From sequence record OM718002.1: a DNA stretch of 64,000 bases. The stretch is one strand, 5' to 3'. Position 1 is the first letter of the stretch; the number at the start of each line of letters is the position of its first letter. Shown in pieces: positions 27,499 to 42,852 of this stretch. The translations under genes and the position numbers were made by a program. The notes beneath the pieces were generated by a model. That model had not been told where the DNA came from and searched no databases. It worked only from the letters and a program-made list of their open reading frames with translations.

Positions 27499-27536
27499 TT
27501 TTTAATTACCTATTTAATAGTTTAATGTTGTATTAG

Positions 27537-27566: not shown

Positions 27567-27572
27567 TAAAAG

Positions 27573-27592
27573 CCCTCTCCTTTGGGAGAGGG
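27573..27592 (-). terminator. Intrinsic terminator
   Basis: ccctctcc-tttg-ggagaggg. Confidence 0.75.
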
Positions 27593-27601
27593 TTTATGAC
27601 T

Positions 27602-27709
27602 TTATTTATATTTTTTCTTATGAGTGTGGTAAATATAGCTAAATAGCATACCGATTGACATTGATACAGCTACCATACCCACATAGAAAAGTTCATTACT
27701 AAGTTGCAT
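27602..27709 (-). CDS. Small single-TM peptide (35 aa, not in ORF track)
   Basis: [35 protein letters not shown]; GAGGA SD. Confidence 0.65.
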
Positions 27710-27770
27710 TAGATTTCCTCAAATAGTTTAATTTATCCCACCTAGTTTTAACCGTCCAGTCGGTTAAAAA

Positions 27771-27788
27771 GAGGACCCGAAGGTCCTC
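27771..27788 (-). terminator. cUUCGg terminator
   Basis: gaggacc-cgaa-ggtcctc with a T-tract on the minus strand. Confidence 0.8.
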
Positions 27789-27791
27789 TAA

Positions 27792-28031
27792 TTATTTCTT
27801 ATAACTCTCAGGGCATCCCATTTTGAGTTTGCCATCCTTTGGGTCTTCAGCGAATAATACTTCATCTGGACACTTCTTAACAGGAGTGTCCTTCGCCTTA
27901 TCTTCCCATTCTACAACAGGCATTTCTAATTTCTTACGAAATTGATACGTATCATAAAGAACATACGTAATCATTCCCATAAGAGAGATTACCCATACCC
28001 ATGCAACAATTAGGATGATTCTAGTTATCAT
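27792..28031 (-). CDS. Membrane protein with a two-Cys C-terminal segment
   Basis: N-terminal TM; KKCPD...MGCPES. Confidence 0.65.
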   Translation of the reverse strand: MITRIILIVAWVWVISLMGMITYVLYDTYQFRKKLEMPVVEWEDKAKDTPVKKCPDEVLFAEDPKDGKLKMGCPESYKK

Positions 28032-28398
28032 ACAACTCCTCGCCGACTATATTGAAACACCCATTACTGAGTTTTTCAGTCAGCATCTCACCAAGATCAC
28101 TTCCCTCGCTCTTTGCCAAAAGCTTAAGTGCGGGATCAGTGAGATTTTGGTATATTACATCGACATTATCCAATGCGATATTAATAGCGAGTGCCTTATC
28201 ACTCTGGTTTTTATCTATGGCAATGGATAGTTCATCTTGCAGTATTGCATACATCTCCAATGGCTCACCGCCATTAGTGTAGAATTGAACCATATTCTTT
28301 GCCAAGCTGTGCAGCACGTAGCAAGATGACACGGTTACGGGTTGTGCATTAACCGACATTGCTACCATAGTGATAATGAGCGAGAAGACGTATTTCAT
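28021..28398 (-). CDS. Secreted two-Cys paralog-family protein
   Basis: Signal peptide ending VNA; SSC ... NGCFNIVGE. Confidence 0.75.
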   Translation of the reverse strand: MKYVFSLIITMVAMSVNAQPVTVSSCYVLHSLAKNMVQFYTNGGEPLEMYAILQDELSIAIDKNQSDKALAINIALDNVDVIYQNLTDPALKLLAKSEGSDLGEMLTEKLSNGCFNIVGEELYDN

Positions 28399-28430
28399 CC
28401 TATTTTCCTTTTGAAAGTATTCGATATGAA

Positions 28431-28886
28431 TTAAATGAGTTCAACAATTACCATGTGAGTGAATTTCTCACCAATATGCTTCATGCAGTAATTGCCATAA
28501 TACCCGCTGATAAAAGCTGCCAGATTAGGAGTAGTCACATTGTAACCTTGACTACGGATATAATCATGGATCTCTTTACTGTTAAGGTCATTATTGATTT
28601 TATTAAGACTATTGAATACGAATGTTAACGCAATCCAATTATTGGTATCCAACTCATCTTTGAGTTTAGCAGAGTTGTTGAGCATAAGCACACCAACTTC
28701 ATCTGCGCTATGACCTTCACTCATTCGAAATACAGCTTGTTTAGTAATGGTTTCAACCATTGCACACGACTGCACAGTGAGTTGAGCATCTTTTTTACCA
28801 ATCTTGATTTCAGCCATTGCGGTATTGAACATGATACCGGTAATGGCAATGAGACCAGCGAAAGCTGCTGCAATTACATTTTTCAT
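28431..28886 (-). CDS. Secreted two-Cys paralog-family protein
   Basis: Signal peptide ending AMA; QSC ... NYCMKHIGE. Confidence 0.75.
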   Translation of the reverse strand: MKNVIAAAFAGLIAITGIMFNTAMAEIKIGKKDAQLTVQSCAMVETITKQAVFRMSEGHSADEVGVLMLNNSAKLKDELDTNNWIALTFVFNSLNKINNDLNSKEIHDYIRSQGYNVTTPNLAAFISGYYGNYCMKHIGEKFTHMVIVELI

Positions 28887-28903
28887 TTTAAATCCTTCTT
28901 CAT

Positions 28904-29287
28904 TTATTTAATGGTAAGAATAGTAATTTTTTCAGGATTTACTGGAACTTTAATTTTAGATTTATGTTGGAGAAACTCAACAACCACCATAGACTTATCC
29001 ATTTTATACACTTCACATACTTTGACAAGCCTATCTACTACGCAACCAATTTTACCGGCATTTTGAGAAAAGAAAGATTTTGCTTTTCTAATAGCCTCGC
29101 GTTTCTCAAGCATTTCCATACGCATATTTTCAATATGTTTATCGCGTTGAACACGATTAAACTTACGCATATGTCGTTCGATCTTACTAATTTCAGAAGA
29201 GTGTAATGAATAAGCAGCAGCTTCTTTCAGTTTCTCATATACTTCCACTGCCATTACCACGTGATCATCTTCAAAATTTCTTTTCAT
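28904..29287 (-). CDS. Hypothetical protein (coiled coil plus SH3-like C-terminus)
   Basis: ORF inside the secreted-protein operon. Confidence 0.65.
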   Translation of the reverse strand: MKRNFEDDHVVMAVEVYEKLKEAAAYSLHSSEISKIERHMRKFNRVQRDKHIENMRMEMLEKREAIRKAKSFFSQNAGKIGCVVDRLVKVCEVYKMDKSMVVVEFLQHKSKIKVPVNPEKITILTIK

Positions 29288-29300
29288 ATCTATGCCTTTT

Positions 29301-30095
29301 TCACTGTTTGATTAAATTTGACACTGCTTCTTGTTTACATTGAGTATTCATCCATAATGCAATGTCTTTGGGTTCTTGTCCAGTTTCCACCATATCGATA
29401 ATGATACGGGTATTACGTTGTGCTTTCTCACGGGCATTTAACATATCAGGATCATTAATAATGAATTCCCTACCCATAACTGGATCTAATCCAATATAAG
29501 CTTTAGATGCAATAGTTCTCACCATTGCTTCATATTGGTCACATCCACGTTCAGTTAATACAAGGTTATCTGCATTGGCACTACCGCCAAATAGCAAACC
29601 TAGGAATCCATAGAAAAAAGTGTGACGTATTGTCTTCCAACAAATACGCATCTCTTCATTTTTTGTATAAAGCTTTTCCCAATCAAACATTAAATAGAAA
29701 CTTTCTTTTTGGATAGAAGGGTGTAACCAAATAGGTTTAATACTTACTTCAAGAAGTTTACTATTTGGATTCTTACCGATAAAGATAACTTCAACAATGG
29801 CTCGTGCTAAAGCATCTTTTTCTTTACCATTCCATCCAAATTTTATTTCATCAGCCGTAATGTAAAGACGTATTCCATCACCCACGTATTTGGGTAACCA
29901 AACAGCTTTACCTAGTTGCATTGGAACACTATTAGGGATCCCCCCAACCATCCAGGTAGCATTGGTGAAATGAATAGCGACATCATCATTTAACCACTTT
30001 AGAATAGCTGGCCTTACCCAGCTATCTACCAAATTACCACATGTCAATGCAGCTAGCATAGCCATGAGTATAATGACAATATAAATACTAACCAT
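29301..30095 (-). CDS. Membrane protein; C-terminal part is a two-Cys paralog domain with an internal signal-peptide-like segment
   Basis: N-terminal TM; MRICWK...LFGGSANA then RGC ... TQCKQEA. Confidence 0.7.
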   Translation of the reverse strand: MVSIYIVIILMAMLAALTCGNLVDSWVRPAILKWLNDDVAIHFTNATWMVGGIPNSVPMQLGKAVWLPKYVGDGIRLYITADEIKFGWNGKEKDALARAIVEVIFIGKNPNSKLLEVSIKPIWLHPSIQKESFYLMFDWEKLYTKNEEMRICWKTIRHTFFYGFLGLLFGGSANADNLVLTERGCDQYEAMVRTIASKAYIGLDPVMGREFIINDPDMLNAREKAQRNTRIIIDMVETGQEPKDIALWMNTQCKQEAVSNLIKQ

Positions 30096-30098
30096 ATT

Positions 30099-30458
30099 CT
30101 ACTCCAAGTTAAATTTAGTACCAATTGCTTCAACACAGTTTTCAGCTAGCCTATCTAGAATAGCTCCATTGGTAAATCCTTTTCGTTTATTTACGCGAAT
30201 ATCAACTAAGTTTAATTTAGCATATACGGTACCTGCATAGAACTCTAAGTCATCCATATCCTTACGAGAGATCATATCTAACTGCATCATTATCTCAAAT
30301 TGGGATAGGTTCTTATCATAAAGCTCAGTTGCTTTTTGTGAAAGATTTACTGCCACATTACATGATTTCTTAGTAATACCCACTTCTACAGCGTGGGCAG
30401 GCTGACATGCAATGGACAGGATTGGCAGGAAAAGGAATAATAGCCAATTCTTAAGCAT
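30099..30458 (-). CDS. Secreted two-Cys paralog-family protein
   Basis: Signal peptide ending AHA; KSC ... ENCVEAIGT. Confidence 0.75.
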   Translation of the reverse strand: MLKNWLLFLFLPILSIACQPAHAVEVGITKKSCNVAVNLSQKATELYDKNLSQFEIMMQLDMISRKDMDDLEFYAGTVYAKLNLVDIRVNKRKGFTNGAILDRLAENCVEAIGTKFNLE

Positions 30459-30470
30459 GTTGTACCTCCA

Positions 30471-30878
30471 TTATTTTAGAGTAAGTGGTTTTGCTTCAAA
30501 CGCACCTGCCGCTACACAACGCTGGAAATAACCATCAATGATGAATTTCTCAGGAGTGGTCTTATAGACTTTAGCAGCATTTGTTGCACGTGGCAAACTT
30601 GCCTCAATTGCCATTTTATCTACCTTAGACCATAGGTAAAATAGACCAGTGAGTTCTTCAACTTTAGACTGGTTGGTCTTTAGATCTTTAGTGTTATTAA
30701 GGATATAATGAATCCTTTCATAAGTCTTCATTTGCACTTCAGTTACAGATGCACCTTTTACAAACAATTCATCTGCCTGTTTTACAAACTCGATGCATGA
30801 ATCACGATTAGTGTACATGACAGCCGAGTTAGCAGTGATAGTTACAATAGACAACATAAATACAATTACATATTTCAT
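30471..30878 (-). CDS. Secreted two-Cys paralog-family protein
   Basis: Signal peptide MKYVIVFMLSIVTITANS; DSC ... QRCVAAG. Confidence 0.75.
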   Translation of the reverse strand: MKYVIVFMLSIVTITANSAVMYTNRDSCIEFVKQADELFVKGASVTEVQMKTYERIHYILNNTKDLKTNQSKVEELTGLFYLWSKVDKMAIEASLPRATNAAKVYKTTPEKFIIDGYFQRCVAAGAFEAKPLTLK

Positions 30879-31286: not shown

Positions 31287-31943
31287 TTAACATACAATTT
31301 CATTATCAGAAAATAGTTTATTATATTCTTTTAGTGCATCCCCACCAACCATAGTACACCTGCCATAGAGAACAGATATAGCCAGATCTTTAATAGCGGG
31401 GTGACAATTATTTAACTTACTGATTAGTTGAGCTTTCTCAGTCAGATACAGTTCAGCAAAATCAGGCTTATCATTAACAATCGACCACATGTTTGAAATG
31501 GAATCTAGTAACTTAAGAGATTGACCACTCCATGAAATGCGAGAAAGTCTTTCATGTTGTAAACTAATCCTAGTTTTACGATTACCTTCGTAAGTTACAT
31601 TTGTTAGTTCAGTTACTAAATTAACAACAGGGATTGAGAATAGTTTAGTTAGATCAGAAGCAGTTACAGCAGTATCCTCAATTACATCATGTAACCATGC
31701 TGCTTTATAAGCAGCGTGAGATAGGTCGAATAATTGCGCCATCTCAGCTACTTGTAATAAATGATGCCAGTAAGGTTTTCCTGAACCATCTCGCAATTGA
31801 CCAACAGCAGTATGTGCCGCAATGGCATATGATGCAGCCATTGCATTACCCGCATTGGAATATTTGCCATTACCTAGATGGTTAGTTAAGAGAATATTCT
31901 CTTTCCCTCCTTCTAGAATATCGATAATTTCATTCATTAGCAT
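31287..31943 (-). CDS. HD-domain hydrolase, small alarmone hydrolase (Mesh1/SpoT-HD-like)
   Basis: H..Q.R.GSGKPY.HH, AAWLHDVIEDT, LV.ELT, LKLLDSISN. Confidence 0.8.
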   Translation of the reverse strand: MLMNEIIDILEGGKENILLTNHLGNGKYSNAGNAMAASYAIAAHTAVGQLRDGSGKPYWHHLLQVAEMAQLFDLSHAAYKAAWLHDVIEDTAVTASDLTKLFSIPVVNLVTELTNVTYEGNRKTRISLQHERLSRISWSGQSLKLLDSISNMWSIVNDKPDFAELYLTEKAQLISKLNNCHPAIKDLAISVLYGRCTMVGGDALKEYNKLFSDNEIVC

Positions 31944-40324: not shown

Positions 40325-40582
40325 CTATTTATTTACACAGATTAGAGTATGTTCTACTTTACTAGTACTAGAAGAAAAATAACGTAATAGAACACCATCA
40401 CTGATTTTTACAGTCTCTACATTATTACGAATAGCACTTGCTTTAGCTAGTTTTTGAATACGCTCAATCGCGCTAAAACAAGTAGTCATGTCAGAGAACT
40501 CAGTGGTTGACTGCGATGCACCATTGGCTTGATAACCAGCGATACTGATACTACTAAAAAGAATTGCTAAAGTTGCATTCAT
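40325..40582 (-). CDS. Small secreted/membrane protein with two Cys
   Basis: Hydrophobic N-terminus; EFSDMTTC ... LICVNK. Confidence 0.6.
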   Translation of the reverse strand: MNATLAILFSSISIAGYQANGASQSTTEFSDMTTCFSAIERIQKLAKASAIRNNVETVKISDGVLLRYFSSSTSKVEHTLICVNK

Positions 40583-42251: not shown

Positions 42252-42542
42252 TTATTTATTTTTCTTTCTTGACTTATCTTTAATAACTAAGTCTAATGCT
42301 TCAAACATTTTAACAGCAGTTAAATGGTCGATAGAGTATGCCTTTTTACGTAAACGTCCAATAGCTACTGTATACTGGTATTCAGATAAACCATCACTCA
42401 TATTGTCAATAATTGATAGTGCTTCTTTATAAAGCCTGTTACACTTTATCGTGTGTTTGATGGCATAATAACCCCAGTTAATTAAAGCCATCATTATAAT
42501 CAGAAACAAAATACCTATAATTACTGTCATGATATCATTCAT
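42252..42542 (-). CDS. Membrane protein, tandem paralog of 42535
   Basis: TM followed by IIDNMSDGLSEYQYTVAI. Confidence 0.7.
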   Translation of the reverse strand: MNDIMTVIIGILFLIIMMALINWGYYAIKHTIKCNRLYKEALSIIDNMSDGLSEYQYTVAIGRLRKKAYSIDHLTAVKMFEALDLVIKDKSRKKNK

Positions 42543-42852
42543 TTGCTGTTTCCCTATTATTACATTTTAATATAATCAATGAGTTGATATCGTAAATAAA
42601 AGATGTAAAAATATGTTGATTTGTTATTTTAGATGATTCTTTATCTATAATGTCTTGGACAGCATTTTGATAGAAAAAATAACTTATGCCATTGGGCATT
42701 TTATCTAATACATATCTAACCTTATAAACACCCATCCAGTGAATATAATGATTTTTTATATTAATAATGAAAGTTACACATGTTGATATAGCCGTTAGTG
42801 TTATCATTGATATAACAAATACTTTATACATTTGCAACCCACAGATTCTCAT
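42535..42852 (-). CDS. Membrane protein, tandem paralog of 42252
   Basis: TM followed by VLDKMPNGISYFFYQNAV. Confidence 0.65.
   Translation of the reverse strand: MRICGLQMYKVFVISMITLTAISTCVTFIINIKNHYIHWMGVYKVRYVLDKMPNGISYFFYQNAVQDIIDKESSKITNQHIFTSFIYDINSLIILKCNNRETANE

Follow-up and report, generated by a model that had tools for sequence, protein, structure and literature searches.

Why should phiKZ spend early transcript on at least five predicted exported proteins of one fold? Studies of phiKZ-like phages have dealt mainly with cytoplasmic matters (the phage nucleus, the spindle, the RNA polymerases and anti-defence), and a jumbo-phage review of 2026 never mentions periplasm, lipoprotein, secretion or superinfection. 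The question is raised by an operon in the 64,000-nucleotide stretch of record OM718002.1 (hereafter the window, at its full length), which matches Pseudomonas phage Churi at 100% identity and the reference phiKZ at 99.8%. Five genes of this operon, gp247, gp248, gp249, gp251 and gp252, and the dispersed gp229 are under study; operon and dispersed genes alike are annotated as hypothetical in the records, and the open reading frames (ORFs) lie on the minus strand exactly where a preliminary description of this DNA had placed them (Table 1). That description took the six for one diversified family of secreted two-cysteine proteins of a kind described nowhere. We find in the early unit several diverged paralogs that share a single phage-specific domain, about 90-125 residues long, and the part of this explanation that concerns family, export and early operon is very probably correct; the explanation as a whole, extending to action in the envelope, stands in our judgement at about an even chance. 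With nothing corresponding in Pfam, NCBIfam, PADLOC, PHROG annotation or the literature searched, the family indeed appears undescribed, being a new domain family within the known theme of small early exported phage accessory proteins.

The assignment to one early transcription unit, running as had been proposed from a promoter ahead of gp246.1 to a terminator behind gp253, relies on agreement between sequence signals and mapped transcript ends. The window carries a T-rich element with TATATTAC at the promoter and a hairpin with a T-run at each of two terminators (Table 1). According to passages of the Oxford Nanopore Technologies (ONT)-cappable-seq supplement (10.1101/2023.10.13.562163), promoter P122 is listed with the identical 50-nt string as an "early promoter" of Wicke et al. 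2021, is seen by differential RNA sequencing (dRNA-seq) too and has its transcription start site (TSS) at phiKZ 240373, i.e., window 31194, with termination sites T111 at 243801 (window 27766) and T112 at 243999 (window 27568); in the same passages unit TU179 spans gp246.1-gp253, and TU180 comprises TU179 plus gp253.1. The genes are separated by gaps of 3-32 nt, with one 11-nt overlap, and each is preceded by a Shine-Dalgarno site. P122 is kept in a diverged relative, the 6.4-kb metagenomic contig L007, which bears the whole operon at 58-96% protein identity and provided a second sequence for every phiKZ-only gene. In both of two infection formats, mass spectrometry found the product of Churi gp059 (equal to gp248) at 15 min post infection (PMC11849849). 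The quoted passages of the ONT-cappable-seq supplement (10.1101/2023.10.13.562163) also place two starts inside the unit, a "late" one (P123, phiKZ 243202, window ~28365) 33 nt 3' of the gp252 start codon and a "middle" one (P124, phiKZ 243620, window ~27947) inside gp253. In the Churi record gp252 is shortened to 28021-28293, lacking the leader and the first Cys; a late, leaderless form of gp252 is conceivable.

Export was assessed by a simple home-made rule for n-, h- and c-regions, requiring a positive n-region, an uncharged h-region of 8-17 residues and small residues at -3/-1. Cleavable-looking leaders were thereby recognized in gp247, gp248, gp251, gp252 and gp229; gp250 and gp246.1, encoded in the same unit, have none, and gp253 and gp253.1 are single-pass membrane proteins, as expected for the further membrane proteins announced at 27792 and 27602. 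The preliminary description ascribed a Sec-type signal peptide to all six candidates. From the screen we infer such cleavable Sec leaders for gp247, gp251, gp252 and gp229; the claim calls for revision in gp248, most relatives of which have a lipobox, and in gp249, in which the leader is internal. After predicted cleavage each of the six domains contains exactly two Cys, at mature positions 10/103, 10/85, 10/78, 16/109, 8/96 and 8/82, the first lying 8-16 residues from the mature N-terminus and the second 11-17 from the C-terminus. This combination of leader and terminal Cys pair, noticed from the outset, characterizes 6/6 candidates versus 1/56 size-matched genes of the window, and the joint positional probability of the Cys, obtained by shuffling given two Cys each, is 2.5e-6, a value indicative only because the thresholds were set after the data were seen. 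The second Cys, said to be usually followed by G, begins a C-x(3-5)-G motif in all candidates except gp249 (5/6). As diagnostic of the family one may take a leader, T-x-x-S-C in the first helix and C-x4-G-x-[KF] ending the last helix. On these features we infer, with good foundation, a periplasmic location and a disulfide for the family.

Common descent had to be sought beyond pairwise similarity. Plain BLASTP among the six gave values near noise and dominated by leaders; therefore the leaders were removed and profiles were compared. The gp248 family comprises 32 sequences collected by a search of 5.8 billion proteins and an HMMER scan that covered all of 1.84 billion cluster representatives, and it is narrow, since the gp248 profile matched only 19 of these representatives. 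For gp251, gp252 and gp247 the phage collection and the 5.8-billion-protein database yielded, beyond the phiKZ species, only one metagenomic contig with 72-85% identity, making deep alignments impossible. Even so, all-versus-all hhalign of leader-less profiles gave E<0.004 in 8/36 candidate pairs versus 0/42 pairs involving controls, the best of which had E=0.014. The strongest link connects gp251 with gp252 (E=1.9e-6 over 103 columns), followed by gp247 with gp302 of PS119XW (E=1.2e-4, the only link of gp247), gp248 with gp252 (E=5e-4), with Psa21 gp333 (E=6.5e-4), with gp251 (E=9e-4) and with the C-terminal domain of gp249 (E about 3e-3, range 2-5e-3), and gp251 with gp229 (E=1.7e-3). When the gp248 profile was run against 102 ORFs of the window, gp252, gp249 and gp251, in this order, were the non-self matches ranking above the 98 others (best E=0.018). 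Each gene falls into its own function-less PHROG, the sole cross-match being that of gp251 to the PHROG of gp248 (E=0.0026); Pfam, NCBIfam and PADLOC returned no match for the operon genes or gp229, and a PDB sequence search detected no similarity to any solved structure. Profile comparison thus supports common descent of gp248, gp251, gp252 and the C-terminal domain of gp249. One profile match was discarded: P0037, a Cys-free metagenomic protein of 495 aa hit by the gp248 profile over eight stretches (E=6e-11), was taken for a repeat-driven false positive. It is built of about eight tandem repeats of ~55 residues (…YVYKGQVYT…LRKMLAQFSETAGRIEVTQLIDDYLKKR…).

The Cys pair is conserved in homologs, as the preliminary description demanded of a true family. 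Every one of the 32 gp248 relatives (25-39% identity) has C33 and C108, and none has more or fewer than two mature Cys; G76, I100 and the C-x4-G motif are nearly invariant; gp229 orthologs of PS119XW, PA1C, PhiPA3, Phabio and 201phi2-1 retain both Cys in 5/5 cases at 39-54% identity, and every Cys of gp247, gp248, gp249, gp251, gp252 and gp253 is kept in L007. The ratio of nonsynonymous to synonymous substitution rates (dN/dS) between phiKZ and L007 is 0.03-0.16 across the operon genes (0.09 for gp247), which indicates purifying selection. In gp248 the same alignment reveals a further Cys, placed in the leader and followed by Q/H-P in 28/32 relatives, the other 4/32 having plain signal peptides without it. 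Under the lipobox criterion, [LVI]-x-[GAS]-C at the end of the h-region, 20 of the 32 are canonical, four near-canonical (YVGC, SIAC; LSIAC in phiKZ) and four non-canonical (MTMC), and UniRef labels the phiKZ and Phabio proteins "Lipoprotein". Because of the lipobox in most relatives gp248 is probably a lipoprotein processed by signal peptidase II rather than a plain Sec substrate, the AHA|V site also offered by the n/h/c-region rule notwithstanding, and its family appears to alternate between lipid-anchored and soluble forms. Q-P-A after the Cys is no known signal for inner-membrane retention in Lol sorting of Pseudomonas; therefore the outer membrane is the default expectation for gp248.

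A fold for the domain was predicted by AlphaFold2 from an alignment of 18 gp248 sequences. The model has a mean predicted local distance difference test score (pLDDT) of 89, and of about 97 across the mature part; it consists of a short strand (25-27), helices 30-48, 53-67, 71-82, 84-92 and 97-110 and a closing strand (115-117). According to this confident model gp248 is a five-helix bundle each terminal helix of which holds one conserved Cys, Cys33 in the first and Cys108 in the last. In a Foldseek search against viral models the targets ranking after gp248 orthologs include A0A5C1K8Y4 (121 aa; template modelling score (TM) 0.64, probability 1.0, E=7e-3), identified by cluster look-up as the PS119XW ortholog of gp229, and A0A481W4R7 (150 aa, TM 0.56), likewise identified as Psa21 gp333, together with a target of 151 aa (TM 0.63, probability 1.0), one of 264 aa (TM 0.59 over 110 columns) and proteins of ~160 aa from 201phi2-1 and Phabio. 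The membership of gp229 is thus supported by structure, via the model of its ortholog, and gp251 and gp249 probably share the predicted gp248 fold; gp252 is not among the top 50 targets. Against PDB, the top six distinct folds for the gp248 model are saposins, represented by saposin A, saposin C, Na-SLP-1 and the saposin-like insert of prophytepsin, aligned over 73-96 columns with a root-mean-square deviation of ~3 Å for the best.

The arrangement of gp249 differs from that of the single-domain members. An N-terminal hydrophobic segment is followed by a domain of ~120 residues, a leader-like segment at ~149-175 and the 89-residue two-Cys domain, and this second leader-like segment is complete (MRICWKTIRHTFFYGFLGLLFGGSANA|DN, ending in SANA|DN). 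The protein looks like a fusion, for which the positive-inside rule predicts a middle domain in the cytoplasm and a C-terminal domain in the periplasm. The middle domain is free of Cys and has no detectable relatives, and positively charged residues precede the internal leader. An internal translation start for the C-terminal domain was considered and rejected: Met149 has no Shine-Dalgarno site at a usable distance, and none is conserved in L007.

Orthologs of gp248 and gp229 occur in all Pseudomonas chimallivirus genera sampled, and the family was found only in these chimalliviruses and in a handful of metagenomic relatives, the 19 representatives among 1.84 billion. At the gp248 locus the number of copies is one in PhiPA3 and in Phabio, two in Psa21, three in PS119XW and five in phiKZ. 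Directly 3' of the gp248 ortholog in PhiPA3, Phabio, PS119XW and the metagenomic contig L008 stands a small transmembrane protein with a C-x6-C tail (Table 1). phiKZ gp253, 96% identical in L007, shows the same architecture of transmembrane helix plus tail, the tail being different, and a small protein of this design may be a conserved partner of gp248.

Table 1. Features of the early unit, the dispersed member and the small transmembrane proteins next to gp248 orthologs (positions in the window unless a contig is named)
Feature	Position	Strand	Remarks
Early promoter P122	31194..31243	-	T-rich element and TATATTAC at 31209-31202; TSS 31194
gp246.1, 87 aa	30905-31168	-	First gene of the unit; no leader; not a family member
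gp247, 135 aa	30471-30878	-	Leader, predicted cleavage ~ANS|AV; Cys28 and Cys121; family membership unproven
gp248, 119 aa	30099-30458	-	Probable lipoprotein, LSIAC18 then QPAHA; mature Cys33 and Cys108; reference member
gp249, 264 aa	29301-30095	-	Two-Cys domain at aa 176-264 (29301-29570)
gp250, 127 aa	28904-29287	-	Basic; no leader; co-transcribed; not a family member; served as control
gp251, 151 aa	28431-28886	-	Predicted leader AMA|EI; Cys41 and Cys134; CMKHIGEKF motif; family member
gp252, 125 aa	28021-28398	-	Predicted leader VNA|QP; Cys26 and Cys114; very acidic, isoelectric point (pI) 4.2; family member
gp253, 79 aa	27792-28031	-	One transmembrane helix and charged tail with two Cys; last gene before T111
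Intrinsic terminator T111	27766..27788	-	GAGGACC-TTCG-GGTCCTC and T5
gp253.1, 35 aa	27602-27709	-	Single-transmembrane peptide; reached by read-through (TU180)
Intrinsic terminator T112	27568..27592	-	Hairpin and T-run
gp229, 121 aa	42888-43253	-	Dispersed member; predicted leader LAAS|LV; Cys35 and Cys109 (numbered from ATG 43253); basic, pI 9.4
Transmembrane-tail proteins, 51-56 aa	L003:6505-6669, L004:6351-6506, L005:7348-7518, L008:5741-5896		One transmembrane helix; tail E-x-C-x-[RK]-Y-P-x-x-C

What such proteins would do is best set out as a sequence of steps. The export signals would bring the domains to the periplasmic side within minutes of infection, and there oxidation (DsbA) would turn the Cys pair into a disulfide that clasps the two terminal helices together, an arrangement known from saposin-like proteins. 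A lipid anchor would hold gp248, by default at the outer membrane; other members would either be soluble or stay attached to the inner membrane, and the two-Cys domain of gp249 would be exported via its internal leader inside a larger membrane protein. Diversified surfaces, with pI ranging from 4.2 to 9.4, would bind different envelope targets, lipids or proteins, and in this way the members would condition the infected cell's envelope, most likely so that secondary attack from outside is excluded or blunted. They would be dispensable on the laboratory host: phage with orf252::Tn is viable, and the operon lies within the largely dispensable orf184-orf304 arm, in which the authors suspect host-interaction genes (10.1101/2025.11.23.690004). 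Superinfection exclusion or envelope protection as the function is our guess, possible though rather doubtful. Closest in lifestyle appear to be T5 Llp and the Cor proteins of phi80, T1 and N15, early phage lipoproteins that block reinfection; gp248 shares with them the lipobox, early expression and small size, they are dispensable in the laboratory, as the phiKZ members would be, and T5 Llp carries a disulfide. In contrast to the single-copy Llp and Cor, phiKZ has an array of paralogs, most of them not predicted to be lipidated, and no homology to known exclusion proteins emerged as Pfam, PHROG-annotated, NCBIfam or structural match. T4 Imm, Sp and RI are likewise early, small, envelope-located and non-essential and alter the response of the cell to further phage; no homology to them was detected, Imm and Sp being membrane proteins and RI having a signal-anchor-release (SAR) sequence. 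The operon provides a tractable handle on envelope manipulation by a nucleus-forming phage, given that knock-outs are within reach, as orf252::Tn shows, and that the small proteins should purify easily; if members exclude other phages or alter the outer membrane, this bears on the design of cocktails with therapeutic phages of the phiKZ/OMKO1 type.

Several observations weigh against the reading of one exported, disulfide-clasped family directed at the envelope. The gp247 profile scores against those of gp248, gp251 and gp252 like a control (E 0.2-0.7); its AlphaFold2 model, computed from an alignment of four sequences, one from the window and three from the protein search, is poor (pLDDT 53), and Foldseek with this model recovered only the ortholog of gp247 itself (TM 0.46) and hence no structural link to the core group. 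In the ranking of window ORFs by the gp248 profile gp229 did not rise above the empirical null. The 151-aa and 264-aa structural targets are equated with gp251 and gp249 by length only. The resemblance to saposins is slight (E 0.6-1.8, TM 0.43-0.50 per query and 0.55-0.69 per target, probability 0.6-0.9), and the saposin signature of six Cys in three disulfides is absent, exactly two Cys being present in every mature domain; it is a weak lead rather than membership. Finally, dN/dS between phiKZ and L007 is low, which speaks against a fast arms race at present. Taking the sequence results for gp247 and gp229 at face value, with the gp247 model unreliable, one could suppose that gp247, and perhaps gp229, are unrelated exported proteins with a convergent leader and terminal Cys pair, the operon merely grouping envelope-directed genes. 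We consider this rather unlikely, as the model of the gp229 ortholog matches gp248, the five predicted helices of gp247 with Cys in the first and the last mirror those of gp248, and all six share one Cys geometry; for gp248, gp251, gp252 and the C-terminal domain of gp249 the supposition is rejected on homology. The claim of one diversified family is upheld for five of the six, four by profiles and gp229 by structure, and is unproven for gp247; that of a shared fold is borne out by the gp229 ortholog and Psa21 gp333 and probable for gp251 and gp249, gp252 lying outside the top 50 targets and the gp247 model being too poor to use.

Granting the family, its members may act in ways other than exclusion. 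Saposin-like lipid handling would have the domains bind or extract envelope lipids (phospholipid, lipopolysaccharide, lipoprotein acyl chains) and remodel membranes instead of addressing host proteins, altering outer-membrane composition or causing vesiculation, for example. Saposin-like proteins (saposins A-D, NK-lysin, Na-SLP-1 and plant-specific inserts) are likewise small and all-helical, with four to five helices packed in a bundle, and act outside the cytoplasm, and in this fold outer disulfides link the first and last helices, as the single disulfide predicted here would do; saposin-type folds are moreover the top PDB matches of a confident model. These matches are not significant, short helical bundles matching each other easily; the phiKZ domain has one Cys pair instead of three, is ~15-45 residues longer, has a short beta-clasp of its N- and C-termini and lacks sequence similarity to the saposin-like proteins, and the mature domains are not markedly hydrophobic, with a grand average of hydropathy (GRAVY) of -0.06 to -0.43. 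Lipid handling in general we rate as unlikely, and the more specific picture of nucleus-forming jumbo phages which, within minutes of infection, export into the periplasm saposin-like, disulfide-clasped lipid-binding proteins, soluble and lipid-anchored, to re-engineer host envelope lipids, as quite improbable, although if true no saposin-type lipid-handling system would have been described before it in phage or in the Gram-negative periplasm. A role as inhibitors of host periplasmic or envelope enzymes or of weapons, such as peptidoglycan hydrolases, type VI effectors of neighbours or envelope-acting defence, would keep the infected cell intact for the cycle of ~1 h with one target per paralog. 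This proposal, unlikely as well in our estimate, draws on the expansion of paralogs with very different surface charge, on the copy number differing between genera, and on the location in an accessory arm thought to hold host-interaction genes; it finds no similarity in PADLOC, Pfam or NCBIfam, and no known immunity or inhibitor fold is among the Foldseek matches.

Control of lysis timing from the periplasm, in which the exported domains would sense superinfection or bind a lysis protein and delay lysis in the manner of the T4 antiholin RI, appears very improbable. T4 RI is likewise a small exported helical protein. It has been reported that phiKZ lyses more slowly at high multiplicity, and a lysis-inhibition system with unknown components has been suggested (PMC12894885). 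According to the same work, the phiKZ holin gp142 belongs to class IIIb and has its large soluble domain on the cytoplasmic side, its regulator gp143 being cytoplasmic too (PMC12894885); therefore a periplasmic antiholin would have no obvious partner, and the operon is early and distant from the gp141-144 cassette. The o-spanins of Rz1 type resemble gp248 in being phage lipoproteins with a periplasmic Cys, but they are proline-rich, unstructured and embedded in or next to an i-spanin gene, whereas gp248 is modelled as a folded helical bundle and belongs to an early operon. As an o-spanin gp248 is rejected: in phiKZ this role falls to gp141.1, encoded in the late lysis cassette gp141-144 (PMC12894885), and the gp248 unit has an early promoter.

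Some minor observations concern the surroundings of these genes and their records. At the head of the operon gp246.1 is absent from the otherwise collinear L007, where the early promoter stands directly ahead of gp247, and its presence in phiKZ is a recent gain or its absence a recent loss. Just past T112, ahead of gp254, a second early-promoter-like element with TATATTAC occurs at 27528-27535; the passages of the ONT-cappable-seq supplement (10.1101/2023.10.13.562163) cited above give no TSS for it. Two ORFs, 42535-42852 adjoining gp229 and 40325-40582 (85 aa), have hydrophobic N-termini and two Cys near their ends; both were rejected as members, having no profile link to the family. The record of phage U5 (MT995928.1) labels gp247 "MazF family toxin-antitoxin system protein" and gp248 "putative DNA methylase", names that found no support in our searches and look like annotation errors. 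Numerous short fragments of gp247-gp252 and gp229 with 86-100% identity are deposited as "partial [Klebsiella pneumoniae]" on contigs of 200-700 bp, and whole phiKZ-like contigs under "Pseudomonas aeruginosa"; these probably represent phage carry-over or assembly contamination. Just upstream, gp246 (31287-31943) lies in a separate early unit ending at terminator T110 and encodes an HD-domain protein (Pfam HD_4 matched on the L007 ortholog), for which annotations differ between metal-dependent phosphohydrolase, (p)ppGpp synthetase and GTP pyrophosphokinase.

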